From Ylistrum balloti (Eukaryota), in contig NW_026782880.1 in NCBI RefSeq assembly GCF_031769215.1, positions 1 to 64,000 on the forward strand: DNA of 64,000 nt. The letters run 5' to 3'. A model generated the notes under the pieces. That model had not been told where the DNA came from. It saw only the letters and a program-made list of their open reading frames with translations, and did not search any database. A program made the position numbers and the translations under genes. How positions within the stretch are numbered: the stretch's first letter is position 1; the number at the start of each line of letters is the position of its first letter. Positions 36,455 to 64,000 of the stretch are shown piece by piece.

Positions 36455-36836
36455 ATGGAGGATTTTTTTCAAATTATACAAGTACAAGATCTTAGAAAAT
36501 TCTGTGGTTAGCCCAGATAATGGCTTGTGTAGGATTTGGATTGGACCTGTAACAAGGACAGGGAAATATGGAATTCTGTCATTTAAGGACCCCAGTGATT
36601 TAAAATGGAAAAAGAAACATGCACACAGACTTGCTTTTATTTGTTTTTCTGAAAATTTAGAATTGTCAAGTGATCTGGACTGTTCCCATCTCTGTCATAA
36701 TAGTTTATGTTTAAATGTAGAGCACATAAGTTCAGAACCTCATTTTGTAAATAATAACAGGCAGTACTGTTTAAATTCAAATGTGTGTTATGGTCATTTA
36801 GGGTTCAGTGACTGCATGTTGAATTTGAAAATGTAA
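36455..36836 (+). CDS. His-Me finger endonuclease, copy 6
   Basis: Same core and T7 frameshift as copy 1. Confidence 0.85.
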
Positions 36837-37034
36837 TTGAGTTTTTATTGATTTGAGGGTATTAGCTATTGTACACTGATGTATACAACATTGTCCGACT
36901 ACCACCACGTGGAGGTTCCCTCATTAGGTAGTCATATATTTTGTTGTTGTTGTTGCTGTTGTTGTTACATTATTTTGTGTTTTTTTTTCTGATTGTTGAC
37001 ATGTCTCTAATAAATTTGTTGTCACCTCTTCTTC

Positions 37035-38199
37035 TCAATACAGGTGGTCCTGAGGTCGGTTGTCTCCCCTACATGGATGGATGTTGGGATCTAGCTGACC
37101 TCTCCTGTAGTCAGACTTCCGAGCGGACCTGGACCTTTTCGCATGCTGCTTGTGCTGTTCTGCTAACAACAACATACTTCTTTTCTTGACAGCAGGTTTG
37201 TATTGGTGGTGGCGTTGATATATTTCCTCTGAGCTGAGTTGATTAAGTTTATGTTTGACCTCCCTACTTGATTGAAGAAGCAGTTGTATTCAAACCTAAT
37301 GACACAGTGATCAGGTGACATCATATCCTTTCCCTCTCAGCCAAGCTCCTGTCCAGCAAAGTTTGTTGTGGAGGGCACGTCCAAGTATCCACTTCTTAGG
37401 GGTAGATGTCTCGATACCCAGACTTAACCCCTGTGAGGCATTCATCCCTGGCTTCTTAGCACTTCCAAATGATGTGCTGTTGTACCGCCCATCCACAGCT
37501 AGTCCGATGGTGCTCGGGGAATCATCTCCTCTCAGGGTGTTGGCCTCCACCACCAGTCTGGTCTTCTCGGACATGTCCTTTTTGTTGAGGGCAGTAATGT
37601 CCTTGGACACTTGATTTGCCTGTCGCTGCACTCCACTCTTGGCTCCTGCAGGTATATTCAGGTGTCCGAGAAGTAACGTGGCTCCTTTGGTGCTGACAGC
37701 CTGGCCACACAAAGCTGAAGGCAGGTACTTGTTGACAAGGGCTGGCTTTGGTCCGGGCTTATCCGTGTCTGCCTCTCTATGTAGTTTGTACAGTGGAGAT
37801 CTGTTCTGGCATTTATTACATCGGACAGCACAACTCCATCCCAGAGCCCTTTTCCGCTCGGTGTCCAGTTCAAACTCCGGTACCATGCATGATGTAGTGT
37901 TTGGTTGTCCGGCGTGAAGTCTGATGATGGTGTTCCACATTTTCACCATCAACACTATGTCGATGATCCGGTTTCCTTCTATTACAGGCTCAGAGTTGGA
38001 TTCTTCAGCTGTAACAGTTGCCGGCCGTAGTATCCATGTTGGACAAGGTCTGTCTCCAGTATCTGTTGTTACCAGGGAAAGGCCGTCAGGACTGGGCTTG
38101 GTGATCAGCTGAAATTCCTGGGTGGTCAGTCTTCTGGTCAGAGCTGGTCTCTCTTCTCTGGTGACAGGTACCTCAGGATCTTCAACTTTAAATACCTGG
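37035..38199 (-). pseudogene. KolobokP-type transposase, copy 6; 5' end removed at the LINE junction
   Basis: Sequence breaks at aaatacctgg|T11 (38199/38200); the intact units continue cccttattc. Confidence 0.85.
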
Positions 38200-39476
38200 T
38201 TTTTTTTTTTAGCTTAACGTCCTTGTTCCGGTTATAACCGAGCCTAGGACACTAAGGGGGAGGGGGCTGGTAGGGCCGAGGCTTTAGGGTGTGCAATTTC
38301 GCTTTTTAGTAATCACCAAACAGGTCTAATATGGGGAGGACAGATCTGACTAAATCTATACCCTAACGTCTAAAGAAAAAAAAAAAAAAACTGGGGAAAT
38401 TTTGGACTGTCACAGAAACGCCTAGTCCTACTCTAGTCTCACTTTATATTTCCCTAATATAAACCTATGCTCTGTGGCGGCTAGCAGTTAGCCTTCTCTT
38501 TTTCGAAAACCAGCAGAGGTTCTTTAACGTGCACGGCGTGACTCACTGTACACCGGACCCCCGTTTAACGTCCCTTCCGAAGGACAAGAAGTTTTAGAAG
38601 ATAGCGGGAGAGAGTGTATGGGAAAGTCGGAAATTGGAAAATAGGTTTAGCTTGTTAGCTGGTGTAGGTTTGTTATTTGTAGATGGGATTACTAGCCACC
38701 ATTTGACAAGGTTAGTCATGCTGGTCTAGAGTGGATTTTAAAAGTGGGGAACTGTGTTATTAAGTTCAGTTATGAGAGTGGATGTGATGGGGTGATGTAA
38801 AGAATGTGCTGGAATTGGGTTAGCGTAGATTTTTGGGATTAGTGAGAATAAATGTGAATTATTATACAATCGATGTCGTTCGGGAGACTGTAGATTACTG
38901 TGTATAATCGTCTACATGTCTACCCTACTAGAACAGGGATTTGTATATTAAAAGGTGGAAGGAGGTAGAGTGGAAGAGATTTTGTAATGGTTGTTGGCTT
39001 TGGGTTTCGGCCCAGTGTATGTTGTATTTATGTAGGAGATGTTTTTGTGTATGTATGTGGTGTTGTGGGTAAAAAAAAAAAAAAAAAAATGGGGGGGGGG
39101 GGAATGTTAATGTTTTTTTTTTTTTTTTTTACAATGTCCCCTGCTAAGGGATGTGGTGTGTGTTATTGGCATGTATTAAAGGGTATTGTTGGTATGTGTG
39201 AGGTGGTGAAATTATAGTCCTGTGTCCAGTGTTGAATACACCTCCCTGTAAAGTCAATTACAGAGGGCTGTGTATCCTGGTTTCCCTACCTACCATAGGT
39301 TACTGACCACCCATTGGGGACATGTAGATTCGAATACGTCCACTGTTTATCCAGTTATAGTAAGCAGTGGTTGTACGATCTACAAGTAGTACCTATTTGT
39401 GTTTTTATTCTATACTGGACGTGGACTCATAATTGCGTATATTGCGTGTGTGTGTGTGTGTTTTTTGATTTTTTTT

Positions 39477-39507
<31 letters not shown>

Positions 39508-39521
39508 ATTATATCGCTTTC

Positions 39522-44563: not shown

Positions 44564-45421
44564 GTTGTGTTTGTAGTTAGTTGACAGAGGGAAAAGGGTG
44601 AGAGGAATTCCTGTGGGGAGATCCTAATTAGTCTAGAATAAAAGGTCTGGTGTGTTACCTGGAGACGGAGCGACAGAGACCTTGATTGAGAAAAGAACGC
44701 GGTCAAGCGTGAAAGTGAGTGGTCTGGATAGCAGAGGTTGTGTAGTCAGGTGTGAAAGTGTGATATCTGGCCACGGAAAGACAATGGACAGGAACCAGAT
44801 ACAGTTTTTCTTTTGTTTTTGGGGTTGGGATGGCACTTTATAAGGCCGTCTTAAAAATGGTCCGAAATGAATAGCCCGATAAGAAAATAGATAAAATAAA
44901 GGTTATATGTATCAGAGATATATAAAATATGAAATATTTTCTACAGAATTATAACTCTACCTAATACTGTTTGGACCTTCCTATTGTATTTGATATATAG
45001 CTGAATCTAGTTATAACTATAGTATCACTATAAAACTCCTTAAACAAGGTATCTAAATAACAAATTATACAGACCAGGATACTATTTATTATCAGTTCCC
45101 GACGCTAAAATACGAGATAGCGACTAAATGATTAATAAGAAATTTTGAAAAGTACTTATCCTTCTGATGGATTTCTCGGGAACTCTGTTGTCTAATTAAT
45201 CCTCTGTCTGCCGATAGAATTAACACATCAAAAAAAGTAATATATATATAAAGAAAAAAAAAAAGTCCACAGGAATTACACAATATATTCCAGAAGAATA
45301 TATGGAATATATATATATAGAAAAGACTGTTGGTGAATGATGTAACCTAACACTATATCGTTGATGACAGGTAACAAAGGTACTCTAAGCCTGTAGGTAG
45401 GTGTCGACAGCTCTAGAGGGG

Positions 45422-45610
45422 TCAGTGTTATGAGTATGTGATGGGGTGATGTAAAGAATGTGCTGGAATTGGGTTAGCGTAGATTTTTGGGATTAGTGAG
45501 AATAAATGTGAATTATTATACAATAGATGTCGTATCGTACATGCCCCGCCCAGGGATTTGTATATTAGAAGGTGGAAGGTAGGGTGGAAGAGATTTTCGT
45601 AATGGTTGTT
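45422..45610 (-). repeat. Copy of an internal 3' UTR segment at the LINE 5' end (non-terminal direct repeat)
   Basis: Matches 38766-38995 and 63662-63888, apart from a rearranged middle that contains atgccccgccc. Confidence 0.9.
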
Positions 45611-47434
45611 CAGCCGCACCGTTTCGCGGTTATAACCTCGCCGAGGACACCTAACGGCGCGTTAGCCTGTCTGTGTGGAAAACAAGTAATTTGTGTTTCC
45701 TTGGTGTGAATAAACGTTGTTTATAGCTCTAAATTATTGGAGAAAATTAGTGATATATACACCTATTTGCTAACGGATAGATAGGCAAACGAATGGTGTT
45801 TTCAAAATTTAAATCGGTTTCGTAATGAGTGAGCTACATGACATTTTCCTATAATTTTGTCAGTGCGGTTTCACTATTAGTTGAATAGAATTGTTCTAAA
45901 TTCGTAATATATGCGTTATTTTCATAAACACACTATTTACTTAGTTTCTTAATATATACATGTTCATTGTATATATGGTAATAAATGGTATTTGTGAATA
46001 ATTTAGATTTAGAATGGGTAAATATCATAGACATGGAAGCACATTTATCGAATTCCTGCTATACTTAATCTCAATCCATAGTCTCCACCATTTTCGATTC
46101 GATTATCGCATTTAATTGCTAACAAATATCACATTCTAAGTATGGAATATGTTTTTTGGGGGTTTTTTTCCCTCCCAATTCATACGTCATCGTATCCACA
46201 TGTGTGTTGTGCTGTATTGTATGTGTGATCATATATATACGTGTACACATGTGTACTTGACTCGACTCTACGCAAACATGTATTAATTCTGTGTTGTCTA
46301 GATATCGAACTCGAAAATAAAGAAATGGTGTGTATGTATGGGGGTGTGTTTGTGGGTGTGGGTGTGCGCGCGCTAGTAACAGTCACAGGTGAGAGGGGAA
46401 AAAAGGAAAAAAAAAAAAACACATGCACACACTCACACACAAAACAAAACAAAACCACACAAATAGGAGAATCGGATTTCATATTTTTAAAAAATAAAAC
46501 TGCCGTGGTTGGAGCCCCCGGACTCAGCCTTTCGCAATAAATGTGTTTGGCTCACACATCCATTTTATACATTCTGGGTTAAATTTATACTTTAGAAATT
46601 TGAGTCAGAACAACTTTATATTCAGGATAATTCTCTATCGTATAGACGACGACGATACTTACCTTTGATCGTGCACTATACACATACGTACACAGGTATA
46701 CACGACAACGTACCCACGTGCACGGACAGTGAAAACGACTCCTGCAACTGGGTAAACTGAAATATGTGGAAATTGGAATAATACCACCTGTTTCAACTAT
46801 TTTGAAAAAAAAATGTATAGCGGAAATTGTCTCGATTTCAGAGTATGATTTTGAAGTGTTTTCACTAGTTTCCACATAAACATTACTATTATTTCATATA
46901 TGAAATGATTGTTGGTTGAAAGTGGCAATTTTTAGCGTTAGTCGGTACACTACATTTGTGTATTTGAATTCAGATTGTACATGCGTAGTATTAAGAAATA
47001 AACCGATACCGTGTCAGCTTATAGGTGTATTAACTGTTGGTTTAACGTGTATATTATTGAAATTCATTCACCTAATCATAAATGGGCGGGGCCGGGCGTG
47101 AGTGTGTACTTGTCGGGTGGGAGACGGGGGACGGGGCGGCGACTTAGAAGTTGTAGCAGGTATCAATTGTTTATAACAAAAAAGTGTGTGATGTGAAGTA
47201 GTCCTGTGGGGTTGGGTGGGAAGGTGGATTTTCCTTTACTTTCGGGTAGGTGGGTGTATTTGGAGGGTGGGGGTGGGGAAGGGTGTTGTTGGTTTGTTCG
47301 TTGGTCAATTATAAGAAGTTAGGATTAGTGCGTTTTGCGTATTTTTCGAGGCGTAAGTGGATGATTTTCGTGACTTGTGGGTAGTCCTAAAAAGGACTGT
47401 TTACGTGTCGTTCGGACGGTGTAAGATATACATC

Positions 47435-47992
47435 TTATTTTTTTGCAGCCTTGGCTTTCTTAGGCTTGTCTGTCTTAGCTTTCTTCGGAGACTTGATAGC
47501 CTTTTTCTTAGGGGTCTTGGGCTTGGTAGTTTTCTTGGATGGTTTCTTCTCCGTGGTTTTCTTGGTAGCTGCTTTCTTGGGTGTCTTTGCCTTTGGTTTC
47601 TTAGCCGTCGCCGACGTGTCGCTTTCTTCGCCGCCGGTTTCTTAGGTTTTGCTGCTTTCGGCTTAACCACTTTCTTAGCGGCTGGTTTTTTGGCGGGTTT
47701 AGGTTTCTCTCCGAGCTTGAATGATCCAGCAGCTCCGGTTCCTTTCGACTGTTTCAGGGCTCCTTTCTTCACGCCGTTCCGGAGGGCGATCTTCAGGTGT
47801 GCGTTGATAGCCTTAGCGTGTGTGTCCCACTTTGAAGTTAGCCATGATGTATTTCAGTATTGCCTGACGGGACGAGCCTCCACGTTCCTTCAGACTTCCC
47901 ACTGCAGTGGCCACCATGTCGCTGTACTTTGGATGAGCTGCCGGGGTCTTTGGCTTCTTCACTGCTTTCTTCACTGGAGTCTTCTCTGCCAT
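47435..47992 (-). pseudogene. H1: Histone H1 pseudogene
   Basis: tcggat is replaced by tgtgtgt at 47819-47825 (+1), giving GGA CAC ACA CGC TAA inside the globular domain. A second, -1 lesion lies near 47617. Confidence 0.88.
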
Positions 47993-49843
47993 CTTCGGAT
48001 TCGTCTGGATGTGATTGTTCGAGAACTGCGCTAGTCAGTGCTAGGTAAGCTGTATGCCCCGCCCGTCCTCGCTCAGCCGTTTAAGCGCTTTTTGCTGCAC
48101 CTCGCCGAGGACACCTAACGGCGCGTTAGCCTGTCTGTGTGGAAAACAAGTAATTTGTGTTTCCTTGGTGTGAATAAACGTTGTTTATAGCTCTAAATTA
48201 TTGGAGAAAATTAGTGATATATACACCTATTTGCTAACGGATAGATAGGCAAACGAATGGTGTTTTCAAAATTTAAATCGGTTTCGTAATGAGTGAGCTA
48301 CATGACATTTTCCTATAATTTTGTCAGTGCGGTTTCACTATTAGTTGAATAGAATTGTTCTAAATTCGTAATATATGCGTTATTTTCATAAACACACTAT
48401 TTACTTAGTTTCTTAATATATACATGTTCATTGTATATATGGTAATAAATGGTATTTGTGAATAATTTAGATTTAGAATGGGTAAATATCATAGACATGG
48501 AAGCACATTTATCGAATTCCTGCTATACTTAATCTCAATCCATAGTCTCCACCATTTTCGATTCGATTATCGCATTTAATTGCTAACAAATATCACATTC
48601 TAAGTATGGAATATGTTTTTTGGGGGTTTTTTTCCCTCCCAATTCATACGTCATCGTATCCACATGTGTGTTGTGCTGTATTGTATGTGTGATCATATAT
48701 ATACGTGTACACATGTGTACTTGACTCGACTCTACGCAAACATGTATTAATTCTGTGTTGTCTAGATATCGAACTCGAAAATAAAGAAATGGTGTGTATG
48801 TATGGGGGTGTGTTTGTGGGTGTGGGTGTGCGCGCGCTAGTAACAGTCACAGGTGAGAGGGGAAAAAAGGAAAAAAAAAACACATGCACACACTCACACA
48901 CAAAACAAAACAAAACCACACAAATAGGAGAATCGGATTTCATATTTTTAAAAAATAAAACTGCCGTGGTTGGAGCCCCCGGACTCAGCCTTTCGCAATA
49001 AATGTGTTTGGCTCACACATCCATTTTATACATTCTGGGTTAAATTTATACTTTAGAAATTTGAGTCAGAACAACTTTATATTCAGGATAATTCTCTATC
49101 GTATAGACGACGACGATACTTACCTTTGATCGTGCACTATACACATACGTACACAGGTATACACGACAACGTACCCACGTGCACGGACAGTGAAAACGAC
49201 TCCTGCAACTGGGTAAACTGAAATATGTGGAAATTGGAATAATACCACCTGTTTCAACTATTTTGAAAAAAAAATGTATAGCGGAAATTGTCTCGATTTC
49301 AGAGTATGATTTTGAAGTGTTTTCACTAGTTTCCACATAAACATTACTATTATTTCATATATGAAATGATTGTTGGTTGAAAGTGGCAATTTTTAGCGTT
49401 AGTCGGTACACTACATTTGTGTATTTGAATTCAGATTGTACATGCGTAGTATTAAGAAATAAACCGATACCGTGTCAGCTTATAGGTGTATTAACTGTTG
49501 GTTTAACGTGTATATTATTGAAATTCATTCACCTAATCATAAATGGGCGGGGCCGGGCGTGAGTGTGTACTTGTCGGGTGGGAGACGGGGGACGGGGCGG
49601 CGACTTAGAAGTTGTAGCAGGTATCAATTGTTTATAACAAAAAAGTGTGTGATGTGAAGTAGTCCTGTGGGGTTGGGTGGGAAGGTGGATTTTCCTTTAC
49701 TTTCGGGTAGGTGGGTGTATTTGGAGGGTGGGGGTGGGGAAGGGTGTTGTTGGTTTGTTCGTTGGTCAATTATAAGAAGTTAGGATTAGTGCGTTTTGCG
49801 TATTTTTCGAGGCGTAATTGGATGATTTTCGTGACATGTGGGT

Positions 49844-49859
49844 AGTCCTAAAAAGGACT
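49844..49859 (-). terminator. Replication-dependent histone 3' stem-loop (also at 47383, 52305, 54766, 57225, 59685, 62358)
   Basis: Sense AAAC-AGTCCT-TTTT-AGGACT-ACCCA: 6-bp stem, 4-nt loop and the canonical ACCCA, 36 nt after the stop codon. Confidence 0.92.
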
Positions 49860-49895
49860 GTTTACGTGTCGTTCGGACGGTGTAAGATATACATC

Positions 49896-50453
49896 TTATT
49901 TTTTTGCAGCCTTGGCTTTCTTAGGCTTGTCTGTCTTAGCTTTCTTCGGAGACTTGATAGCCTTTTTCTTAGGGGTCTTGGGCTTGGTAGTTTTCTTGGA
50001 TGGTTTCTTCTCCGTGGTTTTCTTGGTAGCTGCTTTCTTGGGTGTCTTTGCCTTTGGTTTCTTAGCCGTCGCCGACGTAGTCGCTTTCTTCGCCGCCGGT
50101 TTCTTAGGTTTTGCTGCTTTCGGCTTAACCACTTTCTTAGCGGCTGGTTTTTTGGCGGGTTTAGGTTTCTCTCCGAGCTTGAATGATCCAGCAGCTCCGG
50201 TTCCTTTCGACTGTTTCAGGGCTCCTTTCTTCACGCCGTTCCGGAGGGCGATCTTCAGGTGTGCGTTGATAGCCTTAGCGTCGGATCCCACTTTGAAGTT
50301 AGCCATGATGTATTTCAGTATTGCCTGACGGGACGAGCCTCCACGTTCCTTCAGACTTCCCACTGCAGTGGCCACCATGTCGCTGTACTTTGGATGAGCT
50401 GCCGGGGTCTTTGGCTTCTTCACTGCTTTCTTCACTGGAGTCTTCTCTGCCAT
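49896..50453 (-). CDS. H1: Linker histone H1, 185 aa, intronless
   Basis: [26 protein letters not shown]...[27 protein letters not shown] winged-helix domain; Lys/Ala/Pro-rich tail; 3' stem-loop. Confidence 0.98.
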
Positions 50454-50479
50454 CTTCGGATTCGTCTGGATGTGATTGT

Positions 50480-50623
50480 TCGAGAACTGCGCTAGTCAGT
50501 GCTAGGTAAGCTGTATGCCCCGCCCGTCCTCGCTCAGCCGTTTAAGCGCTTTTTGCTGCACCTCGCCGAGGACACCTAACGGCGCGTTAGCCTGTCTGTG
50601 TGGAAAACAAGTAATTTGTGTTT
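50480..50623 (-). promoter_or_regulatory. H1 promoter (present in each unit): H1/AC box, GC box, weak TATA-like element and Inr-like element
   Basis: AAACACA at 50617-50623 (164-170 bp upstream of the ATG); GGGCGGGG at 50518-50525; CATACA ~29 nt upstream of a GCAGTT Inr-like motif. The TATA and Inr assignments are inference. Confidence 0.7.
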
Positions 50624-52356
50624 CCTTGGTGTGAATAAACGTTGTTTATAGCTCTAAATTATTGGAGAAAATTAGTGATATATACACCTATTTGCTAACG
50701 GATAGATAGGCAAACGAATGGTGTTTTCAAAATTTAAATCGGTTTCGTAATGAGTGAGCTACATGACATTTTCCTATAATTTTGTCAGTGCGGTTTCACT
50801 ATTAGTTGAATAGAATTGTTCTAAATTCGTAATATATGCGTTATTTTCATAAACACACTATTTACTTAGTTTCTTAATATATACATGTTCATTGTATATA
50901 TGGTAATAAATGGTATTTGTGAATAATTTAGATTTAGAATGGGTAAATATCATAGACATGGAAGCACATTTATCGAATTCCTGCTATACTTAATCTCAAT
51001 CCATAGTCTCCACCATTTTCGATTCGATTATCGCATTTAATTGCTAACAAATATCACATTCTAAGTATGGAATATGTTTTTTGGGGGTTTTTTTCCCTCC
51101 CAATTCATACGTCATCGTATCCACATGTGTGTTGTGCTGTATTGTATGTGTGATCATATATATACGTGTACACATGTGTACTTGACTCGACTCTACGCAA
51201 ACATGTATTAATTCTGTGTTGTCTAGATATCGAACTCGAAAATAAAGAAATGGTGTGTATGTATGGGGGTGTGTTTGTGGGTGTGGGTGTGCGCGCGCTA
51301 GTAACAGTCACAGGTGAGAGGGGAAAAAAGGAAAAAAAAAACACATGCACACACTCACACACAAAACAAAACAAAACCACACAAATAGGAGAATCGGATT
51401 TCATATTTTTAAAAAATAAAACTGCCGTGGTTGGAGCCCCCGGACTCAGCCTTTCGCAATAAATGTGTTTGGCTCACACATCCATTTTATACATTCTGGG
51501 TTAAATTTATACTTTAGAAATTTGAGTCAGAACAACTTTATATTCAGGATAATTCTCTATCGTATAGACGACGACGATACTTACCTTTGATCGTGCACTA
51601 TACACATACGTACACAGGTATACACGACAACGTACCCACGTGCACGGACAGTGAAAACGACTCCTGCAACTGGGTAAACTGAAATATGTGGAAATTGGAA
51701 TAATACCACCTGTTTCAACTATTTTGAAAAAAAAATGTATAGCGGAAATTGTCTCGATTTCAGAGTATGATTTTGAAGTGTTTTCACTAGTTTCCACATA
51801 AACATTACTATTATTTCATATATGAAATGATTGTTGGTTGAAAGTGGCAATTTTTAGCGTTAGTCGGTACACTACATTTGTGTATTTGAATTCAGATTGT
51901 ACATGCGTAGTATTAAGAAATAAACCGATACCGTGTCAGCTTATAGGTGTATTAACTGTTGGTTTAACGTGTATATTATTGAAATTCATTCACCTAATCA
52001 TAAATGGGCGGGGCCGGGCGTGAGTGTGTACTTGTCGGGTGGGAGACGGGGGACGGGGCGGCGACTTAGAAGTTGTAGCAGGTATCAATTGTTTATAACA
52101 AAAAAGTGTGTGATGTGAAGTAGTCCTGTGGGGTTGGGTGGGAAGGTGGATTTTCCTTTACTTTCGGGTAGGTGGGTGTATTTGGAGGGTGGGGGTGGGG
52201 AAGGGTGTTGTTGGTTTGTTCGTTGGTCAATTATAAGAAGTTAGGATTAGTGCGTTTTGCGTATTTTTCGAGGCGTAATTGGATGATTTTCGTGACATGT
52301 GGGTAGTCCTAAAAAGGACTGTTTACGTGTCGTTCGGACGGTGTAAGATATACATC

Positions 52357-52914
52357 TTATTTTTTTGCAGCCTTGGCTTTCTTAGGCTTGTCTGTCTTAG
52401 CTTTCTTCGGAGACTTGATAGCCTTTTTCTTAGGGGTCTTGGGCTTGGTAGTTTTCTTGGATGGTTTCTTCTCCGTGGTTTTCTTGGTAGCTGCTTTCTT
52501 GGGTGTCTTTGCCTTTGGTTTCTTAGCCGTCGCCGACGTAGTCGCTTTCTTCGCCGCCGGTTTCTTAGGTTTTGCTGCTTTCGGCTTAACCACTTTCTTA
52601 GCGGCTGGTTTTTTGGCGGGTTTAGGTTTCTCTCCGAGCTTGAATGATCCAGCAGCTCCGGTTCCTTTCGACTGTTTCAGGGCTCCTTTCTTCACGCCGT
52701 TCCGGAGGGCGATCTTCAGGTGTGCGTTGATAGCCTTAGCGTCGGATCCCACTTTGAAGTTAGCCATGATGTATTTCAGTATTGCCTGACGGGACGAGCC
52801 TCCACGTTCCTTCAGACTTCCCACTGCAGTGGCCACCATGTCGCTGTACTTTGGATGAGCTGCCGGGGTCTTTGGCTTCTTCACTGCTTTCTTCACTGGA
52901 GTCTTCTCTGCCAT
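52357..52914 (-). CDS. H1: Linker histone H1
   Basis: Protein identical to 49896-50453. Confidence 0.98.
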
Positions 52915-54817
52915 CTTCGGATTCGTCTGGATGTGATTGTTCGAGAACTGCGCTAGTCAGTGCTAGGTAAGCTGTATGCCCCGCCCGTCCTCGCTCAGCC
53001 GTTTAAGCGCTTTTTGCTGCACCTCGCCGAGGACACCTAACGGCGCGTTAGCCTGTCTGTGTGGAAAACAAGTAATTTGTGTTTCCTTGGTGTGAATAAA
53101 CGTTGTTTATAGCTCTAAATTATTGGAGAAAATTAGTGATATATACACCTATTTGCTAACGGATAGATAGGCAAACGAATGGTGTTTTCAAAATTTAAAT
53201 CGGTTTCGTAATGAGTGAGCTACATGACATTTTCCTATAATTTTGTCAGTGCGGTTTCACTATTAGTTGAATAGAATTGTTCTAAATTCGTAATATATGC
53301 GTTATTTTCATAAACACACTATTTACTTAGTTTCTTAATATATACATGTTCATTGTATATATGGTAATAAATGGTATTTGTGAATAATTTAGATTTAGAA
53401 TGGGTAAATATCATAGACATGGAAGCACATTTATCGAATTCCTGCTATACTTAATCTCAATCCATAGTCTCCACCATTTTCGATTCGATTATCGCATTTA
53501 ATTGCTAACAAATATCACATTCTAAGTATGGAATATGTTTTTTGGGGGTTTTTTTCCCTCCCAATTCATACGTCATCGTATCCACATGTGTGTTGTGCTG
53601 TATTGTATGTGTGATCATATATATACGTGTACACATGTGTACTTGACTCGACTCTACGCAAACATGTATTAATTCTGTGTTGTCTAGATATCGAACTCGA
53701 AAATAAAGAAATGGTGTGTATGTATGGGGGTGTGTTTGTGGGTGTGGGTGTGCGCGCGCTAGTAACAGTCACAGGTGAGAGGGGAAAAAAGGAAAAAAAA
53801 AACACATGCACACACTCACACACAAAACAAAACAAAACCACACAAATAGGAGAATCGGATTTCATATTTTTAAAAAATAAAACTGCCGTGGTTGGAGCCC
53901 CCGGACTCAGCCTTTCGCAATAAATGTGTTTGGCTCACACATCCATTTTATACATTCTGGGTTAAATTTATACTTTAGAAATTTGAGTCAGAACAACTTT
54001 ATATTCAGGATAATTCTCTATCGTATAGACGACGACGATACTTACCTTTGATCGTGCACTATACACATACGTACACAGGTATACACGACAACGTACCCAC
54101 GTGCACGGACAGTGAAAACGACTCCTGCAACTGGGTAAACTGAAATATGTGGAAATTGGAATAATACCACCTGTTTCAACTATTTTGAAAAAAAAATGTA
54201 TAGCGGAAATTGTCTCGATTTCAGAGTATGATTTTGAAGTGTTTTCACTAGTTTCCACATAAACATTACTATTATTTCATATATGAAATGATTGTTGGTT
54301 GAAAGTGGCAATTTTTAGCGTTAGTCGGTACACTACATTTGTGTATTTGAATTCAGATTGTACATGCGTAGTATTAAGAAATAAACCGATACCGTGTCAG
54401 CTTATAGGTGTATTAACTGTTGGTTTAACGTGTATATTATTGAAATTCATTCACCTAATCATAAATGGGCGGGGCCGGGCGTGAGTGTGTACTTGTCGGG
54501 TGGGAGACGGGGGACGGGGCGGCGACTTAGAAGTTGTAGCAGGTATCAATTGTTTATAACAAAAAAGTGTGTGATGTGAAGTAGTCCTGTGGGGTTGGGT
54601 GGGAAGGTGGATTTTCCTTTACTTTCGGGTAGGTGGGTGTATTTGGAGGGTGGGGGTGGGGAAGGGTGTTGTTGGTTTGTTCGTTGGTCAATTATAAGAA
54701 GTTAGGATTAGTGCGATTTGCGTATTTTTCGAGGCGTAATTGGATGATTTTCGTGACATGTGGGTAGTCCTAAAAAGGACTGTTTACGTGTCGTTCGGAC
54801 GGTGTAAGATATACATC

Positions 54818-55375
54818 TTATTTTTTTGCAGCCTTGGCTTTCTTAGGCTTGTCTGTCTTAGCTTTCTTCGGAGACTTGATAGCCTTTTTCTTAGGGGTCT
54901 TGGGCTTGGTAGTTTTCTTGGATGGTTTCTTCTCCGTGGTTTTCTTGGTAGCTGCTTTCTTGGGTGTCTTTGCCTTTGGTTTCTTAGCCGTCGCCGACGT
55001 AGTCGCTTTCTTCGCCGCCGGTTTCTTAGGTTTTGCTGCTTTCGGCTTAACCACTTTCTTAGCGGCTGGTTTTTTGGCGGGTTTAGGTTTCTCTCCGAGC
55101 TTGAATGATCCAGCAGCTCCGGTTCCTTTCGACTGTTTCAGGGCTCCTTTCTTCACGCCGTTCCGGAGGGCGATCTTCAGGTGTGCGTTGATAGCCTTAG
55201 CGTCGGATCCCACTTTGAAGTTAGCCATGATGTATTTCAGTATTGCCTGACGGGACGAGCCTCCACGTTCCTTCAGACTTCCCACTGCAGTGGCCACCAT
55301 GTCGCTGTACTTTGGATGAGCTGCCGGGGTCTTTGGCTTCTTCACTGCTTTCTTCACTGGAGTCTTCTCTGCCAT
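54818..55375 (-). CDS. H1: Linker histone H1
   Basis: Identical protein. Confidence 0.98.
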
Positions 55376-57276
55376 CTTCGGATTCGTCTGGATGTGATTG
55401 TTCGAGAACTGCGCTAGTCAGTGCTAGGTAAGCTGTATGCCCCGCCCGTCCTCGCTCAGCCGTTTAAGCGCTTTTTGCTGCACCTCGCCGAGGACACCTA
55501 ACGGCGCGTTAGCCTGTCTGTGTGGAAAACAAGTAATTTGTGTTTCCTTGGTGTGAATAAACGTTGTTTATAGCTCTAAATTATTGGAGAAAATTAGTGA
55601 TATATACACCTATTTGCTAACGGATAGATAGGCAAACGAATGGTGTTTTCAAAATTTAAATCGGTTTCGTAATGAGTGAGCTACATGACATTTTCCTATA
55701 ATTTTGTCAGTGCGGTTTCACTATTAGTTGAATAGAATTGTTCTAAATTCGTAATATATGCGTTATTTTCATAAACACACTATTTACTTAGTTTCTTAAT
55801 ATATACATGTTCATTGTATATATGGTAATAAATGGTATTTGTGAATAATTTAGATTTAGAATGGGTAAATATCATAGACATGGAAGCACATTTATCGAAT
55901 TCCTGCTATACTTAATCTCAATCCATAGTCTCCACCATTTTCGATTCGATTATCGCATTTAATTGCTAACAAATATCACATTCTAAGTATGGAATATGTT
56001 TTTTGGGGGTTTTTTTCCCTCCCAATTCATACGTCATCGTATCCACATGTGTGTTGTGCTGTATTGTATGTGTGATCATATATATACGTGTACACATGTG
56101 TACTTGACTCGACTCTACGCAAACATGTATTAATTCTGTGTTGTCTAGATATCGAACTCGAAAATAAAGAAATGGTGTGTATGTATGGGGGTGTGTTTGT
56201 GGGTGTGGGTGTGCGCGCGCTAGTAACAGTCACAGGTGAGAGGGGAAAAAAGGAAAAAAAAAACACATGCACACACTCACACACAAAACAAAACAAAACC
56301 ACACAAATAGGAGAATCGGATTTCATATTTTTAAAAAATAAAACTGCCGTGGTTGGAGCCCCCGGACTCAGCCTTTCGCAATAAATGTGTTTGGCTCACA
56401 CATCCATTTTATACATTCTGGGTTAAATTTATACTTTAGAAATTTGAGTCAGAACAACTTTATATTCAGGATAATTCTCTATCGTATAGACGACGACGAT
56501 ACTTACCTTTGATCGTGCACTATACACATACGTACACAGGTATACACGACAACGTACCCACGTGCACGGACAGTGAAAACGACTCCTGCAACTGGGTAAA
56601 CTGAAATATGTGGATTGGAATAATACCACCTGTTTCAACTATTTTGAAAAAAAAATGTATAGCGGAAATTGTCTCGATTTCAGAGTATGATTTTGAAGTG
56701 TTTTCACTAGTTTCCACATAAACATTACTATTATTTCATATATGAAATGATTGTTGGTTGAAAGTGGCAATTTTTAGCGTTAGTCGGTACACTACATTTG
56801 TGTATTTGAATTCAGATTGTACATGCGTAGTATTAAGAAATAAACCGATACCGTGTCAGCTTATAGGTGTATTAACTGTTGGTTTAACGTGTATATTATT
56901 GAAATTCATTCACCTAATCATAAATGGGCGGGGCCGGGCGTGAGTGTGTACTTGTCGGGTGGGAGACGGGGGACGGGGCGGCGACTTAGAAGTTGTAGCA
57001 GGTATCAATTGTTTATAACAAAAAAGTGTGTGATGTGAAGTAGTCCTGTGGGGTTGGGTGGGAAGGTGGATTTTCCTTTACTTTCGGGTAGGTGGGTGTA
57101 TTTGGAGGGTGGGGGTGGGGAAGGGTGTTGTTGGTTTGTTCGTTGGTCAATTATAAGAAGTTACGATTAGTGCTTTTTGCGTATTTTTCGAGGCGTAATT
57201 GGATGATTTTCGTGACATGTGGGTAGTCCTAAAAAGGACTGTTTACGTGTCGTTCGGACGGTGTAAGATATACATC

Positions 57277-57834
57277 TTATTTTTTTGCAGCCTTGGCTTT
57301 CTTAGGCTTGTCTGTCTTAGCTTTCTTCGGAGACTTGATAGCCTTTTTCTTAGGGGTCTTGGGCTTGGTAGTTTTCTTGGATGGTTTCTTCTCCGTGGTT
57401 TTCTTGGTAGCTGCTTTCTTGGGTGTCTTTGCCTTTGGTTTCTTAGCCGTCGCCGACGTAGTCGCTTTCTTCGCCGCCGGTTTCTTAGGTTTTGCTGCTT
57501 TCGGCTTAACCACTTTCTTAGCGGCTGGTTTTTTGGCGGGTTTAGGTTTCTCTCCGAGCTTGAATGATCCAGCAGCTCCGGTTCCTTTCGACTGTTTCAG
57601 GGCTCCTTTCTTCACGCCGTTCCGGAGGGCGATCTTCAGGTGTGCGTTGATAGCCTTAGCGTCGGATCCCACTTTGAAGTTAGCCATGATGTATTTCAGT
57701 ATTGCCTGACGGGACGAGCCTCCACGTTCCTTCAGACTTCCCACTGCAGTGGCCACCATGTCGCTGTACTTTGGATGAGCTGCCGGGGTCTTTGGCTTCT
57801 TCACTGCTTTCTTCACTGGAGTCTTCTCTGCCAT
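57277..57834 (-). CDS. H1: Linker histone H1
   Basis: Identical protein. Confidence 0.98.
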
Positions 57835-59736
57835 CTTCGGATTCGTCTGGATGTGATTGTTCGAGAACTGCGCTAGTCAGTGCTAGGTAAGCTGTATGCC
57901 CCGCCCGTCCTCGCTCAGCCGTTTAAGCGCTTTTTGCTGCACCTCGCCGAGGACACCTAACGGCGCGTTAGCCTGTCTGTGTGGAAAACAAGTAATTTGT
58001 GTTTCCTTGGTGTGAATAAACGTTGTTTATAGCTCTAAATTATTGGAGAAAATTAGTGATATATACACCTATTTGCTAACGGATAGATAGGCAAACGAAT
58101 GGTGTTTTCAAAATTTAAATCGGTTTCGTAATGAGTGAGCTACATGACATTTTCCTATAATTTTGTCAGTGCGGTTTCACTATTAGTTGAATAGAATTGT
58201 TCTAAATTCGTAATATATGCGTTATTTTCATAAACACACTATTTACTTAGTTTCTTAATATATACATGTTCATTGTATATATGGTAATAAATGGTATTTG
58301 TGAATAATTTAGATTTAGAATGGGTAAATATCATAGACATGGAAGCACATTTATCGAATTCCTGCTATACTTAATCTCAATCCATAGTCTCCACCATTTT
58401 CGATTCGATTATCGCATTTAATTGCTAACAAATATCACATTCTAAGTATGGAATATGTTTTTTGGGGGTTTTTTTCCCTCCCAATTCATACGTCATCGTA
58501 TCCACATGTGTGTTGTGCTGTATTGTATGTGTGATCATATATATACGTGTACACATGTGTACTTGACTCGACTCTACGCAAACATGTATTAATTCTGTGT
58601 TGTCTAGATATCGAACTCGAAAATAAAGAAATGGTGTGTATGTATGGGGGTGTGTTTGTGGGTGTGGGTGTGCGCGCGCTAGTAACAGTCACAGGTGAGA
58701 GGGGAAAAAAGGAAAAAAAAAACACATGCACACACTCACACACAAAACAAAACAAAACCACACAAATAGGAGAATCGGATTTCATATTTTTAAAAAATAA
58801 AACTGCCGTGGTTGGAGCCCCCGGACTCAGCCTTTCGCAATAAATGTGTTTGGCTCACACATCCATTTTATACATTCTGGGTTAAATTTATACTTTAGAA
58901 ATTTGAGTCAGAACAACTTTATATTCAGGATAATTCTCTATCGTATAGACGACGACGATACTTACCTTTGATCGTGCACTATACACATACGTACACAGGT
59001 ATACACGACAACGTACCCACGTGCACGGACAGTGAAAACGACTCCTGCAACTGGGTAAACTGAAATATGTGGAAATTGGAATAATACCACCTGTTTCAAC
59101 TATTTTGAAAAAAAATGTATAGCGGAAATTGTCTCGATTTCAGAGTATGATTTTGAAGTGTTTTCACTAGTTTCCACATAAACATTACTATTATTTCATA
59201 TATGAAATGATTGTTGGTTGAAAGTGGCAATTTTTAGCGTTAGTCGGTACACTACATTTGTGTATTTGAATTCAGATTGTACATGCGTAGTATTAAGAAA
59301 TAAACCGATACCGTGTCAGCTTATAGGTGTATTAACTGTTGGTTTAACGTGTATATTATTGAAATTCATTCACCTAATCATAAATGGGCGGGGCCGGGCG
59401 TGAGTGTGTACTTGTCGGGTGGGAGACGGGGGACGGGGCGGCGACTTAGAAGTTGTAGCAGGTATCAATTGTTTATAACAAAAAAGTGTGTGATGTGAAG
59501 TAGTCCTGTGGGGTTGGGTGGGAAGGTGGATTTTCCTTTACTTTCGGGTAGGTGGGTGTATTTGGAGGGTGGGGGTGGGGAAGGGTGTTGTTGGTTTGTT
59601 CGTTGGTCAATTATAAGAAGTTAGGATTAGTGCGTTTTGCGTATTTTTCGAGGCGTAATTGGATGATTTTCGTGACATGTGGGTAGTCCTAAAAAGGACT
59701 GTTTACGTGTCGTTCGGACGGTGTAAGATATACATC

Positions 59737-60294
59737 TTATTTTTTTGCAGCCTTGGCTTTCTTAGGCTTGTCTGTCTTAGCTTTCTTCGGAGACTTGATA
59801 GCCTTTTTCTTAGGGGTCTTGGGCTTGGTAGTTTTCTTGGATGGTTTCTTCTCCGTGGTTTTCTTGGTAGCTGCTTTCTTGGGTGTCTTTGCCTTTGGTT
59901 TCTTAGCCGTCGCCGACGTAGTCGCTTTCTTCGCCGCCGGTTTCTTAGGTTTTGCTGCTTTCGGCTTAACCACTTTCTTAGCGGCTGGTTTTTTGGCGGG
60001 TTTAGGTTTCTCTCCGAGCTTGAATGATCCAGCAGCTCCGGTTCCTTTCGACTGTTTCAGGGCTCCTTTCTTCACGCCGTTCCGGAGGGCGATCTTCAGG
60101 TGTGCGTTGATAGCCTTAGCGTCGGATCCCACTTTGAAGTTAGCCATGATGTATTTCAGTATTGCCTGACGGGACGAGCCTCCACGTTCCTTCAGACTTC
60201 CCACTGCAGTGGCCACCATGTCGCTGTACTTTGGATGAGCTGCCGGGGTCTTTGGCTTCTTCACTGCTTTCTTCACTGGAGTCTTCTCTGCCAT
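59737..60294 (-). CDS. H1: Linker histone H1 (promoter rearranged)
   Basis: Identical protein; the promoter carries a 39-bp LINE fragment and a 175-bp duplication. Confidence 0.97.
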
Positions 60295-60365
60295 CTTCGG
60301 ATTCGTCTGGATGTGATTGTTCGAGAACTGCGCTAGTCAGTGCTAGGTAAGCTGTATGCCCCCCC

Positions 60366-60404
60366 GCTTAACGTCCGTTCCGGTTATAACCGAGCCTAGG
60401 ACAC
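60366..60404 (-). mobile_element. 39-bp, extremely 5'-truncated LINE insertion in the H1 promoter
   Basis: gcttaacgtcc-gttccggttataaccgagcctaggacac equals the LINE 3' terminus (38212-38252) minus 2 bp. It replaces target gcccgtcctcgc, with three extra C and no poly(A). Confidence 0.93.
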
Positions 60405-60441
60405 TCAGCCGTTTAAGCGCTTTTTGCTGCACCTTCCTGCT

Positions 60442-60616
60442 TTTGGATGAGCTGCCGGGGTCTTTGGCTTCTTCACTGCTTTCTTCACTGGAGTCTTCTC
60501 TGCCATCTTCGGATTCGTCTGGATGTGATTGTTCGAGAACTGCGCTAGTCAGTGCTAGGTAAGCTGTATGCCCCGCCCGTCCTCGCTCAGCCGTTTAAGC
60601 GCTTTTTGCTGCACCT
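60442..60616 (-). repeat. 175-bp duplication of the H1 proximal promoter, 5' UTR and first ~22 codons
   Basis: Duplicates 60230-60434 without the LINE fragment and is joined by a 7-bp filler tcctgct. It accounts for the unit length of 2673 (2461 + 212). Confidence 0.92.
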
Positions 60617-62409
60617 CGCCGAGGACACCTAACGGCGCGTTAGCCTGTCTGTGTGGAAAACAAGTAATTTGTGTTTCCTTGGTGTGAATAAACGTTGTTT
60701 ATAGCTCTAAATTATTGGAGAAAATTAGTGATATATACACCTATTTGCTAACGGATAGATAGGCAAACGAATGGTGTTTTCAAAATTTAAATCGGTTTCG
60801 TAATGAGTGAGCTACATGACATTTTCCTATAATTTTGTCAGTGCGGTTTCACTATTAGTTGAATAGAATTGTTCTAAATTCGTAATATATGCGTTATTTT
60901 CATAAACACACTATTTACTTAGTTTCTTAATATATACATGTTCATTGTATATATGGTAATAAATGGTATTTGTGAATAATTTAGATTTAGAATGGGTAAA
61001 TATCATAGACATGGAAGCACATTTATCGAATTCCTGCTATACTTAATCTCAATCCATAGTCTCCACCATTTTCGATTCGATTATCGCATTTAATTGCTAA
61101 CAAATATCACATTCTAAGTATGGAATATGTTTTTTGGGGGTTTTTTTCCCTCCCAATTCATACGTCATCGTATCCACATGTGTGTTGTGCTGTATTGTAT
61201 GTGTGATCATATATATACGTGTACACATGTGTACTTGACTCGACTCTACGCAAACATGTATTAATTCTGTGTTGTCTAGATATCGAACTCGAAAATAAAG
61301 AAATGGTGTGTATGTATGGGGGTGTGTTTGTGGGTGTGGGTGTGCGCGCGCTAGTAACAGTCACAGGTGAGAGGGGAAAAAAGGAAAAAAAAAACACATG
61401 CACACACTCACACACAAAACAAAACAAAACCACACAAATAGGAGAATCGGATTTCATATTTTTAAAAAATAAAACTGCCGTGGTTGGAGCCCCCGGACTC
61501 AGCCTTTCGCAATAAATGTGTTTGGCTCACACATCCATTTTATACATTCTGGGTTAAATTTATACTTTAGAAATTTGAGTCAGAACAACTTTATATTCAG
61601 GATAATTCTCTATCGTATAGACGACGACGATACTTACCTTTGATCGTGCACTATACACATACGTACACAGGTATACACGACAACGTACCCACGTGCACGG
61701 ACAGTGAAAACGACTCCTGCAACTGGGTAAACTGAAATATGTGGAAATTGGAATAATACCACCTGTTTCAACTATTTTGAAAAAAAAATGTATAGCGGAA
61801 ATTGTCTCGATTTCAGAGTATGATTTTGAAGTGTTTTCACTAGTTTCCACATAAACATTACTATTATTTCATATATGAAATGATTGTTGGTTGAAAGTGG
61901 CAATTTTTAGCGTTAGTCGGTACACTACATTTGTGTATTTGAATTCAGATTGTACATGCGTAGTATTAAGAAATAAACCGATACCGTGTCAGCTTATAGG
62001 TGTATTAACTGTTGGTTTAACGTGTATATTATTGAAATTCATTCACCTAATCATAAATGGGCGGGGCCGGGCGTGAGTGTGTACTTGTCGGGTGGGAGAC
62101 GGGGGACGGGGCGGCGACTTAGAAGTTGTAGCAGGTATCAATTGTTTATAACAAAAAAGTGTGTGATGTGAAGTAGTCCTGTGGGGTTGGGTGGGAAGGT
62201 GGATTTTCCTTTACTTTCGGGTAGGTGGGTGTATTTGGAGGGTGGGGGTGGGGAAGGGTGTTGTTGGTTTGTTCGTTGGTCAATTATAAGAAGTTAGGAT
62301 TAGTGCGTTTTGCGTATTTTTCGAGGCGTAATTGGATGATTTTCGTGACATGTGGGTAGTCCTAAAAAGGACTGTTTACGTGTCGTTCGGACGGTGTAAG
62401 ATATACATC

Positions 62410-62967
62410 TTATTTTTTTGCAGCCTTGGCTTTCTTAGGCTTGTCTGTCTTAGCTTTCTTCGGAGACTTGATAGCCTTTTTCTTAGGGGTCTTGGGCTTG
62501 GTAGTTTTCTTGGATGGTTTCTTCTCCGTGGTTTTCTTGGTAGCTGCTTTCTTGGGTGTCTTTGCCTTTGGTTTCTTAGCCGTCGCCGACGTAGTCGCTT
62601 TCTTCGCCGCCGGTTTCTTAGGTTTTGCTGCTTTCGGCTTAACCACTTTCTTAGCGGCTGGTTTTTTGGCGGGTTTAGGTTTCTCTCCGAGCTTGAATGA
62701 TCCAGCAGCTCCGGTTCCTTTCGACTGTTTCAGGGCTCCTTTCTTCACGCCGTTCCGGAGGGCGATCTTCAGGTGTGCGTTGATAGCCTTAGCGTCGGAT
62801 CCCACTTTGAAGTTAGCCATGATGTATTTCAGTATTGCCTGACGGGACGAGCCTCCACGTTCCTTCAGACTTCCCACTGCAGTGGCCACCATGTCGCTGT
62901 ACTTTGGATGAGCTGCCGGGGTCTTTGGCTTCTTCACTGCTTTCTTCACTGGAGTCTTCTCTGCCAT
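62410..62967 (-). CDS. H1: Linker histone H1 (promoter interrupted by LINE copy 2)
   Basis: Identical protein; the LINE poly(A) begins 68 bp upstream of the ATG. Confidence 0.97.
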
Positions 62968-63032
62968 CTTCGGATTCGTCTGGATGTGATTGTTCGAGAA
63001 CTGCGCTAGTCAGTGCTAGGTAAGCTGTATGC

Positions 63033-63035
<3 letters not shown>

Positions 63036-63087
<52 letters not shown>

Positions 63088-64000
63088 CTTAACGTCCTTG
63101 TTCCGGTTATAACCGAGCCTAGGACACTAAGGGGGAGGGGGCTGGTAGGGCCGAGGCTTTAGGGTGTGCAATTTCGCTTTTTAGTAATCACCAAACAGGT
63201 CTAATATGGGGAGGACAGATCTGACTATATCTATACCCTAACGTCTAAAGAAAAAAAAAAAAAAAAAAAAAAAAAAAACAAAAAAACTGGGGAAATTTTG
63301 GACTGTCACAGAAACGCCTAGTCCTACTCTAGTCTCACTTTATATTTCCCTAATATAAACCTATGCTCTGTGGCGGCTAGCAGTTAGCCTTCTCTTTTTC
63401 GAAAACCAGCAGAGGTTCTTTAACGTGCACGGCGTGACTCACTGTACACCGGACCCCCGTTTAACGTCCCTTCCGAAGGACAAGAAGTTTTAGAAGATAG
63501 CGGGAGAGAGTGTATGGGAAAGTCGGAAATTGGAAAATAGGTTTAGCTTGTTAGCTGGTGTAGGTTTGTTATTTGTAGATGGGATTACTAGCCACCATTT
63601 GACAAGGTTAGTCATGCTGGTCTAGAGTGGATTTTAAAAGTGGGGAACTGTGTTATTAAGTTCAGTTATGAGAGTGGATGTGATGGGGTGATGTAAAGAA
63701 TGTGCTGGAATTGGGTTAGCGTAGATTTTTGGGATTAGTGAGAATAAATGTGAATTATTATACAATCGATGTCGTTCGGGAGACTGTAGATTACTGTGTA
63801 TAATCGTCTACATGTCTACCCTACTAGAGCAGGGATTTGTATATTAGAAGGTGGAAGGTAGGGTGGAAGAGATTTTGTAATGGTTGTTTTGGGTTTCGGC
63901 CCAGTGTATGTTGTATTTATGTAGGAGATGTTTTTGTGTGTGTATGTGGTGTTGTGGGTATGGTTTAAAAAAAAAAAAAAATGGGGGGGGGGGGGGGGGG
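63036..64000 (-). mobile_element. Second LINE copy, 3' UTR and poly(A); continues past the window end
   Basis: T50 at 63036-63085, then near identity to 38211 onward. Junction ctgtatgcccc|T50. Confidence 0.95.

Follow-up and report, generated by a model that had tools for sequence, protein, structure and literature searches.

A scallop LINE lineage with a probable preference for the transcription start sites of replication-dependent histone genes

The saucer scallop Ylistrum balloti harbors a long interspersed nuclear element (LINE) of ~7.3 kb that flanks a tandem array of seven linker histone H1 units in the stretch of DNA analysed here (positions 1-64000 of contig JAUZWB010001295.1, assembly GCA_031769215.1, hereafter the window, in which all features relevant to the relation between LINE and H1 lie on the minus strand). 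Copies on other contigs and in a second pectinid, Pecten maximus, indicate that this LINE lineage very probably integrates by target-primed reverse transcription (TPRT) at the transcription start of replication-dependent histone genes, always in the orientation of the gene. Judging from the insertion sites, the target is the cap-site region of these genes (H1 and H3 in Y. balloti, H3 and H2A in P. maximus) and not H1 alone. An initial annotation of the window, made from its sequence only, had proposed a LINE specific for the H1 promoter: homing to H1 is upheld by five more contigs and by the second species, but H3 and H2A turn out to be targets as well.

Loci were fetched by exact look-up of H1, of the first open reading frame (ORF1) of the element, of an ORF1 variant that is annotated on the window contig as a Y. 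balloti protein, of the annotated 246-aa piece of ORF2, and of a 160-aa ORF of the H1 unit, which led to contigs 47, 631, 884, 1110, 1183 and 1207. When the H1 unit is numbered from gcagcaaaaagcgc..., with its ATG at position 107, the usual junctions read ...gggcggggcataca/LINE on one side and tail/gggcggggcataca on the other (slashes mark breakpoints throughout), that is, a 14-bp target-site duplication (TSD) of unit positions 35-48. At least five structurally different insertions are found at H1 unit positions 34/35 and 46-48. On contig 631, for example, copies A and C are both flanked by the TSD gggcggggcataca, copy A with an A18 tail and a 5' end ~30-50 nt short, copy C at full length with an A24 tail and a 27-nt leader, and in copy B the truncation is at position 82 and the junction at H1 unit position 13. 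The copy on contig 884 shows the TSD gggcggggcataca again and is 5'-truncated at position 5676, and the second copies on contigs 1110 and 1183 are alike in their 5' breakpoint and different in their leaders. The first copy on contig 1183 ends in A21/gggcgggg, and the second of the two window copies (copy 2) in A50/gggg, with the nick 4 nt further on. Contig 1110 also holds a scar (ggctga, a G-run, then catacag) with the same two breakpoints as a mini-insert present in the window (Table 1). Empty sites are abundant alongside: 25 of the 31 distinct H1 sites were intact among the loci fetched up to that point, and ~50 core histone genes in arrays were empty.

Duplication of a single insertion does not yield different 5' truncations at an unchanged breakpoint, so that the insertions at the same H1 nucleotides are to be read, from their junction sequences, as repeated separate hits. 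They display what is seen with target-specific LINEs, namely the same nucleotide, one orientation, and empty sites alongside. As a rough estimate, a 15-bp window represents 0.6% of the H1 unit, and four such windows ~1.2% of the core repeat; five or more separate hits in one orientation greatly exceed what chance would give, even with insertion restricted to arrays.

The insertions extend to other histone genes and to another species. In Y. balloti, a 5'-truncated copy on contig 1207 ends in A22/tctctcattc, 45 nt upstream of the H3 ATG, where the intact H3 promoter reads ...acaaaaataggtgactggagatt/tctctcattc. A search of related species, proposed as a check by the initial annotation, found the P. 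maximus element (82% nucleotide identity in ORF2, intact ORFs, (CAAT)n-like tail) in histone promoters too. Its first copy, situated in the H2B-H2A interval of a core histone repeat, is flanked by a 12-bp TSD, attttactcatt, that begins 16 nt after the H2A TATAAAA; the second, found via a look-up of H2A, is full length, 98.5% identical to the first, and inserted in the H3 promoter with an 11-bp TSD (gttttcattct), its tail junction falling on the nucleotide homologous to the H3 junction of Y. balloti. All histone insertions of both species are co-oriented with the gene, and with both P. maximus copies in histone promoters the target preference is kept in the two species examined.

What do these sites have in common? 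In all the pectinid core histone genes examined, a cap-site motif YTCATTY is located 22-25 nt after the TATA box, and the H1 cap site would be CATACAG, 22 nt after a TATA-like CTTAAAC. Every TSD spans the histone cap site, or initiator. The nick on the tail side, in the strand that primes reverse transcription, precedes the initiator CAT(T/A)C by 4-8 nt, which corresponds to 14-16 nt after the TATA or TATA-like box, and the junction on the other strand usually 4-6 nt after the initiator C, resulting in an 11-14-bp duplication that contains the cap site. In one type of H1 allele, the second break lies 12 bp upstream instead, leading to a deletion; the ~12-bp deletion first described in place of a TSD is therefore a property of this allele type, the usual product being the 11-14-bp TSD. 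Mimicry of the sequence upstream of H1 by the LINE tail was also considered and rejected: shuffled sequences reached the best local match (ccgttaggtgtcctcggc against cccttagtgtcctaggc) 159 times in 2000, scores as high occur in other parts of the unit, and the match is not significant taken by itself. Hybrid junctions do exist at the H1 spot of this best match.

How specific is the element? Look-ups by its own annotated proteins, which are blind to location, returned nine copies on six contigs, all at histone arrays. Seven of the eight known 3' junctions are in histone genes (six in the H1 region and one in H3), and the remaining one, that of window copy 1, is in a Mutator-like ORF. Among the six H1-region tails, five are at the promoter site, and one is joined without tail 53 nt inside the coding region. 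Elsewhere within ~150 kb of histone units, no insertion was seen. A twin-primed inverted insertion of the 3' part of the element, flanked by an 11-bp TSD, tttctacagga, lies 4 kb outside an H1 array (L001:16233-17200). Among the copies found, the preference for histone genes is strong, not absolute.

Three copies (window copy 2, the first copy of contig 1110, and the H3 copy; L013:4500-4846, L016:8950-9153 and L010:9200-9410) have their tails in histone cap sites and 5' flanks that are unique and mutually unrelated, so that H1 and core histone arrays have LINEs at their upstream edges, window copy 1 being the mirror image of such copies. That the three non-histone flanks represent one locus is ruled out by their lack of relationship. 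Insertion-mediated deletion, ectopic LINE-LINE recombination and array seeding could each produce edge copies of this kind. A circle-integration model, in which the H1 array entered an older LINE within the Mutator-like array, was rejected, as the 5' flank of copy 2 is unrelated to the Mutator unit. Rearranged LINE pieces are also present at the border between the H1 and core histone arrays of contig 1183 (L005:7900-8400, L020:1-5300): one is a 121-nt tail fragment joined at the H1 site, another a copy with a 3' deletion that abuts the H2B-H2A spacer, and the third a piece of 57 nt within an H2A leader.

Regarding the element itself, Pfam assigns to ORF2 an apurinic/apyrimidinic endonuclease (APE) domain (PF03372/PF14529, residues 1-207), a reverse transcriptase (RT; PF00078, 498-744) and an RNase H domain (PF00075, 955-1083). 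Comparison with PDB structures shows it to be collinear with human L1 ORF2p over residues 6-745, with no evident extra domain, and gives weak matches of the RNase H region to RNase H1 structures. APE followed by RT is the order typical of APE-type retrotransposons without long terminal repeats (LTRs), i.e. LINEs, and an RNase H located C-terminal to RT is a trait of the I, Nimb, Ingi, Tad1 and LOA families. R1-clade elements combine APE and RT without RNase H, and target 28S ribosomal DNA (rDNA) or repeats; here, RNase H is present and histone promoters are targeted. ORF1 (408 aa) matches no Pfam family and, unlike typical I or Jockey-like ORF1, lacks CCHC zinc knuckles (no CX2CX4HX4C motif), and its N-terminal ~165 aa are predicted to form two domains resembling RNA recognition motifs (RRMs; mean pLDDT 74, Foldseek E ~5e-4 to hnRNP A1 UP1 and similar tandem-RRM proteins). 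For naming a clade, PDB and Pfam provide generic LINE matches only. The attribution to the I group made by the initial annotation thus holds for an RNase H-bearing APE LINE, does not fit the ORF1 without knuckles, and as a label drawn from domain architecture alone is unconfirmed.

The 3' untranslated region (UTR) is ~1.3 kb long and composite, with a proximal part, then A/C/T runs, and then a ~900-nt distal part (X) that belongs to the element because it follows the coding part in every copy. The last 48 nt, which fold into an 11+5-bp terminal hairpin, are identical between Y. balloti and P. maximus, and the remainder of X is ~75% identical. The 3'UTR of the P. maximus element comprises about eight tandem ~119-bp repeats that are missing from the Y. 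balloti element (L009:11500-12500, L024:7700-8830). An extra piece of X (X') lies ahead of copy 1, and the interior of X resembles a leader followed by the LINE 5' start, which suggests a repeat shared by the 5' and 3' UTRs, or template switching. Marks of TPRT are present, i.e. tails of A11-A50 ((CAAT)n-like in P. maximus), TSDs of 11-14 bp and one twin-primed inversion, and 5' ends fall at positions ~4, ~10, ~30-50, 82, 4583 and 5676 across copies.

Identity among the Y. balloti copies is 99.3-99.9%, and no fewer than four of them retain two open ORFs, in agreement with the recent activity initially deduced from the window. The family appears, from these sequences, as young, low-copy and belonging to the scallop (Pectinidae) lineage. 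Exact look-up of the 1244-aa ORF2 gave no record, the annotation holding the 246-aa piece only, and its nearest database relatives outside Pecten are only ~40% identical. Searches of the protein collection with ORF1 returned Y. balloti and P. maximus only, P. maximus being the sole close relative. A HMMER scan for ORF1 retrieved three remote relatives, and the two examined are on short contigs without flanking histone genes, thus adding no third species. Metagenome contigs scanned for the invariant 41-nt tail yielded no hits, and an 85%-identical ORF2 from an 'invertebrate metagenome' was discarded as an extra case, as it is Pecten-like, with 97% identity to the P. maximus element, and has no junctions.

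Within the window (Table 1), the 2461-bp unit, the co-orientation with H1 and the intact ORFs reported by the initial annotation are all borne out. It had also placed three junctions at one ~13-bp site, as hits improbable by chance. The first is exactly as described: ctgtatgcccc ends at 63035, and is followed by T50 and, from 63086, by the reverse-complemented LINE tail, 68 nt upstream of the H1 ATG (62967). At the second, a 42-nt copy of the hairpin indeed sits between ...ctgtatg plus a C-run, whose length is uncertain, and tcagccg (60405). At the third, tcagccg does start at 45611, but the abutting sequence is X' (98% to 38782-38882, and 90-98% to 38934-38995 / 63830-63888) and not the LINE 5' end; on the H1 side, 24 nt from this point are unlike those of any other H1 unit, the match to H1 being regained at 45635. 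These three junctions use two breakpoints only (ggctga/ and /gggg), which makes their clustering weaker than it had seemed, and they may represent one insertion allele of the '12-bp deletion' type, later rearranged, a derivation from one insertion that the initial annotation had itself named as refuting its proposal. Since they share these breakpoints and possibly one event, the window junctions alone prove little, and the core of the interpretation is upheld because of the evidence gathered beyond the window, on other contigs and in the second species. The 3' end of copy 1 lies outside H1, as first noted, and the sequence flanking it (38000-38199) matches other units of the array of 317-aa ORFs (Pfam PF20700) at 100% identity. 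Copy 2 runs past the window end and is full length with both ORFs open in the fetched flanking sequence (L013:4846-12131).

Table 1. Features of the 64,000-nt window related to the LINE and the H1 array.
Feature	Position	Strand	Remarks
Mutator-like transposase ORF array (317-aa ORFs)	~21.6-38.2 kb		precedes LINE copy 1 along the plus strand
LINE copy 1, poly(A), 11 nt	38200-38210	-	joined to Mutator-like transposase ORF; off-target 3' junction
LINE copy 1, distal 3'UTR (X)	38211-39113	-	ends in 48-nt hairpin
LINE copy 1, proximal 3'UTR	39114-39521	-	internal A, C, T runs (39070-39131)
LINE copy 1, ORF2, 1244 aa	39522-43256	-	APE, RT, RNase H, C-terminal CCHC motif (Pfam; motif scan)
LINE copy 1, ORF1, 408 aa	43337-44563	-	two predicted RRM-like domains, then T/P/K/Q-rich
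LINE copy 1, 5'UTR	44564-45435	-	canonical 5' end ctgacccc... at ~45432
Additional 175-nt segment duplicated from the distal 3'UTR of the element itself (X')	45436-45610	-	placed ahead of copy 1
Junction stretch	45611-45634	-	tcagccg (H1 breakpoint ggctga/) plus 17 nt differing from other H1 units, like a decayed LINE tail
H1 tandem array, seven units of 2461 bp	45635-63035	-	six intact 185-aa linker-histone genes and one frameshifted
Mini-insert, LINE terminal hairpin only, without poly(A), 42 nt	~60363-60404	-	replaces 12 bp of H1 promoter between ggctga/ and /ggggcatacag
212-bp partial duplication of H1 promoter, 5'UTR and first 65 coding nt	60405-60650	-	intact target site at 60566-60590
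H1 cap-site target	63022-63035	-	intact form gggcggggcataca, 55-68 nt upstream of ATG; here cut after gggc
LINE copy 2, poly(A), 50 nt	63036-63085	-	
LINE copy 2, distal 3'UTR	63086-64000	-	element runs past window end

Several other observations concern the same stretch. The H1 copy adjoining LINE copy 1 (47430-48000, minus strand) bears two frameshifts and a small cluster of substitutions, and is an array-edge pseudogene. The region 60227-60650 is a tandem duplication, with the mini-insert in one copy and an intact target site in the other. At 62358-62373, and at the same place in every H1 unit, a histone-type 3' stem-loop has the unusual stem AGTCCT TTTT AGGACT (coding strand), the core histone genes having the usual GGCCCTTTTCAGGGCC; the stem bases GTCCT/AGGAC are common to the H1 3' stem-loop and the LINE terminal hairpin, possibly by chance. 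The Mutator-like array (19500-38199) consists of ~2.9-3.3-kb units, each with a 317-aa ORF matching PF20700 (E 9e-44), and the tail of copy 1 sits within the N-terminal part of the ORF of its last unit. Further away, a 419-aa ORF with DDE_3 and HTH_Tnp_Tc3_2 domains (2389-3648, minus strand) represents a Tc1/mariner-type transposase, and three successive ORFs of 483, 367 and 183 aa (12392-15575, plus strand), with no Pfam match, possibly belong to another mobile element.

Insertion at a transcription start would have consequences both for the element and for the occupied gene. Directly ahead of the element would stand the TATA box with one initiator copy, and the histone promoter could then start a near-exact, full-length LINE transcript. 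The occupied gene would keep the cap site only and lose the TATA box and upstream elements, and would probably be silenced; such a loss would be tolerated because histone genes occur in large arrays, according to the same safe-haven logic as R1/R2 in rDNA. As for the choice of site, the ORF2 endonuclease would itself read the initiator-proximal DNA, a view favored because nicks are nucleotide-exact in repeated events, and some additional signal (a transcription complex on the promoter, melted DNA there, or the histone locus body) would probably contribute, because three promoters with unrelated sequences are hit, all at a constant spacing from the TATA box.

Full-length copies carry 5' leaders of 12-27 nt built from repeated fragments of the H1 cap sequence ggcatacag (for example gatacgatacggcataccatacagaga before ctgacccc), and leaders of this H1-cap type are also found on two copies whose 5' flank is not H1. 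We lean slightly towards regarding them as the trace of transcripts started at the H1 initiator, with cap-derived G additions, over successive rounds, and thus of promoter capture. The control of the element by a histone promoter, as put forward in the initial annotation, is consistent with insertion geometry and leaders, from which promoter use itself is inferred. A broader proposal, which we offer tentatively and hold to be somewhat short of probable as a whole, is that of the first LINE-class retrotransposon homing to start sites of protein-coding genes transcribed by RNA polymerase II, in which histone genes are found by position and not by long sequence, the captured TATA box and initiator drive full-length, possibly S-phase-timed transcripts, the leaders record successive rounds, and array-edge elements help to move or found histone arrays.

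Could the dynamics of tandem arrays suffice to explain these data? One or a few chance insertions into a histone array may have been multiplied by unequal crossing-over, gene conversion, segmental duplication or haplotig redundancy, with no targeting at all, and the use of only two breakpoints in the window, the regular LINE + 3 x H1 pattern of contig 631, the recurrence of An/gggcgggg on several contigs and the identity of all copies (at least 99.3%) are what would be expected in this case. However, H1 copies at the same site differ in their 5' end (~10, ~30-50, 82, 5676) and leader, which duplication does not produce, the H1, H3 and H2A sites are non-homologous and need separate events, and P. 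maximus repeats the pattern with clean TSDs, every event being co-oriented with the gene; multiplication of this kind is therefore extremely improbable as the explanation. It is also very unlikely that insertion is broad, or local to the donor, and that copies are merely retained, intact and annotated, in histone arrays where they are harmless and homogenised. Off-target tails do adjoin arrays, the census was restricted to annotated ORFs, and three copies have non-histone 5' flanks, but retention cannot give nucleotide precision, such as five or more hits within a 15-bp window of the 2461-bp H1 unit. Also left unexplained are the homologous H3 nucleotide in two species and the uniform orientation, and retention does not fit the ~150 kb of histone units in which insertions elsewhere were not seen.

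A more serious alternative accepts targeting, and attributes it to tethering of the element to a promoter-bound factor (TBP/TFIID or a histone-specific activator) or to the histone locus body, melted or bent DNA being nicked just upstream of the start. The three promoters share only the initiator and are hit 14-16 nt from the TATA box, the start site lies between the two nicks, a long low-complexity tail is present in ORF1, and Ty3 and the Dictyostelium TRE5-A are known to integrate position-specifically by tethering. Against this, nicks are nucleotide-exact in at least four H1 events, as in the endonuclease-determined LINEs R1, TRAS and SART, the folded part of ORF1 is predicted to be an ordinary tandem-RRM-like module, and ORF2 has no evident additional DNA- or protein-binding domain, so that tethering as the main determinant is possible and rather doubtful.

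Integration at histone start sites, guided at least in part by the endonuclease, is thus the reading retained here, and several points weigh against it. Comparison of the sites reveals no motif beyond the 5-nt initiator that is common to the H1, H3 and H2A targets. The census covered copies with annotated ORFs or near histone arrays, and 5'-truncated copies elsewhere could be numerous. Two tails are off target, those of copy 1 (in the Mutator-like ORF) and of the twin-primed insertion, and pieces only 78% identical to LINE and X lie upstream of the H1 array of contig 884, outside histone units (L031:2668-4392); these pieces are those of an older relative or of a decayed copy. Unequal crossing-over that copied a single event, or haplotigs, may account for the An/gggcgggg junctions shared by contigs 631 and 1183. 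A single ancestral insertion could in principle underlie the H3 insertions of both species, and the assembly has homopolymer noise. Finally, the leaders could arise by template jumps at integration, with promoter use deduced from geometry and from these same leaders.

Site-specific LINEs are known to reside in rDNA, small-RNA genes, spliced-leader genes, telomeric repeats, microsatellites and other transposons; to our knowledge, histone or other protein-coding promoters are not among the targets of site-specific APE LINEs, and we know of no site specificity in the I, Nimb, Ingi, Tad1 and LOA families. A literature search found no histone-targeting LINE and no paper on the Y. balloti assembly, most subscription journals and Repbase being outside its scope, so that a prior description is possible. 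On sequence grounds, the scallop element would represent a site-specific LINE with a new target class, the start sites of histone genes, for which no prior report was found. It would add a protein-coding class of targets, transcribed by RNA polymerase II, to those of site-specific LINEs, and would offer a natural case of promoter capture via insertion geometry. As three unrelated promoters are hit at one TATA/initiator position, it would become testable whether promoter architecture or a nuclear body can guide an APE-type LINE. The element would also bear on the break-up, bounding and perhaps dispersal of histone arrays, among them the H1 arrays that are separate in bivalves, and its precise, oriented, multicopy 'safe-haven' integration is a property wanted in retrotransposon-based gene insertion tools.

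Among known systems, R1 and R2 of arthropod 28S rDNA resemble the scallop LINE in their precise, co-oriented site within a tandem, highly expressed gene family whose redundancy tolerates inactivated units, in using or profiting from the host gene promoter, and in their variable 5' junctions and 5' truncations. They differ in recognizing one rRNA sequence at a site inside the transcript, as opposed to the transcription start of non-homologous RNA polymerase II genes (H1, H3, H2A), and in their structure, R2 having a restriction-like endonuclease and one ORF, and R1 no RNase H. TRAS1 and SART1 (telomeric repeats) and, in the Tx1 group, Keno (U2 snRNA) and Mutsu (5S rRNA) are likewise APE-type elements with multicopy targets and oriented insertion, in which the endonuclease largely sets the nick; in contrast to the scallop LINE, they read one defined repeat or small-RNA gene sequence, and lack RNase H. 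The closest parallel in positioning relative to the transcription start and bound factors, with many genes of one class being hit, is provided by TRE5-A and Ty3, although these rely on RNA polymerase III genes and on tethering to TFIIIB/TFIIIC, Ty3 being moreover an LTR element with an integrase, and tethering is only a candidate in the scallop LINE. Drosophila I factor and the I, Nimb, Ingi, Tad1 and LOA families share with it the two ORFs, an ORF2 with APE, RT, RNase H and a C-terminal Cys-His motif and, for I-type elements, a simple-repeat tail like the (CAAT)n of P. maximus, but the scallop ORF1 is devoid of CCHC zinc knuckles, and its ORF2 stands at ~40% identity from the nearest relatives outside Pecten.

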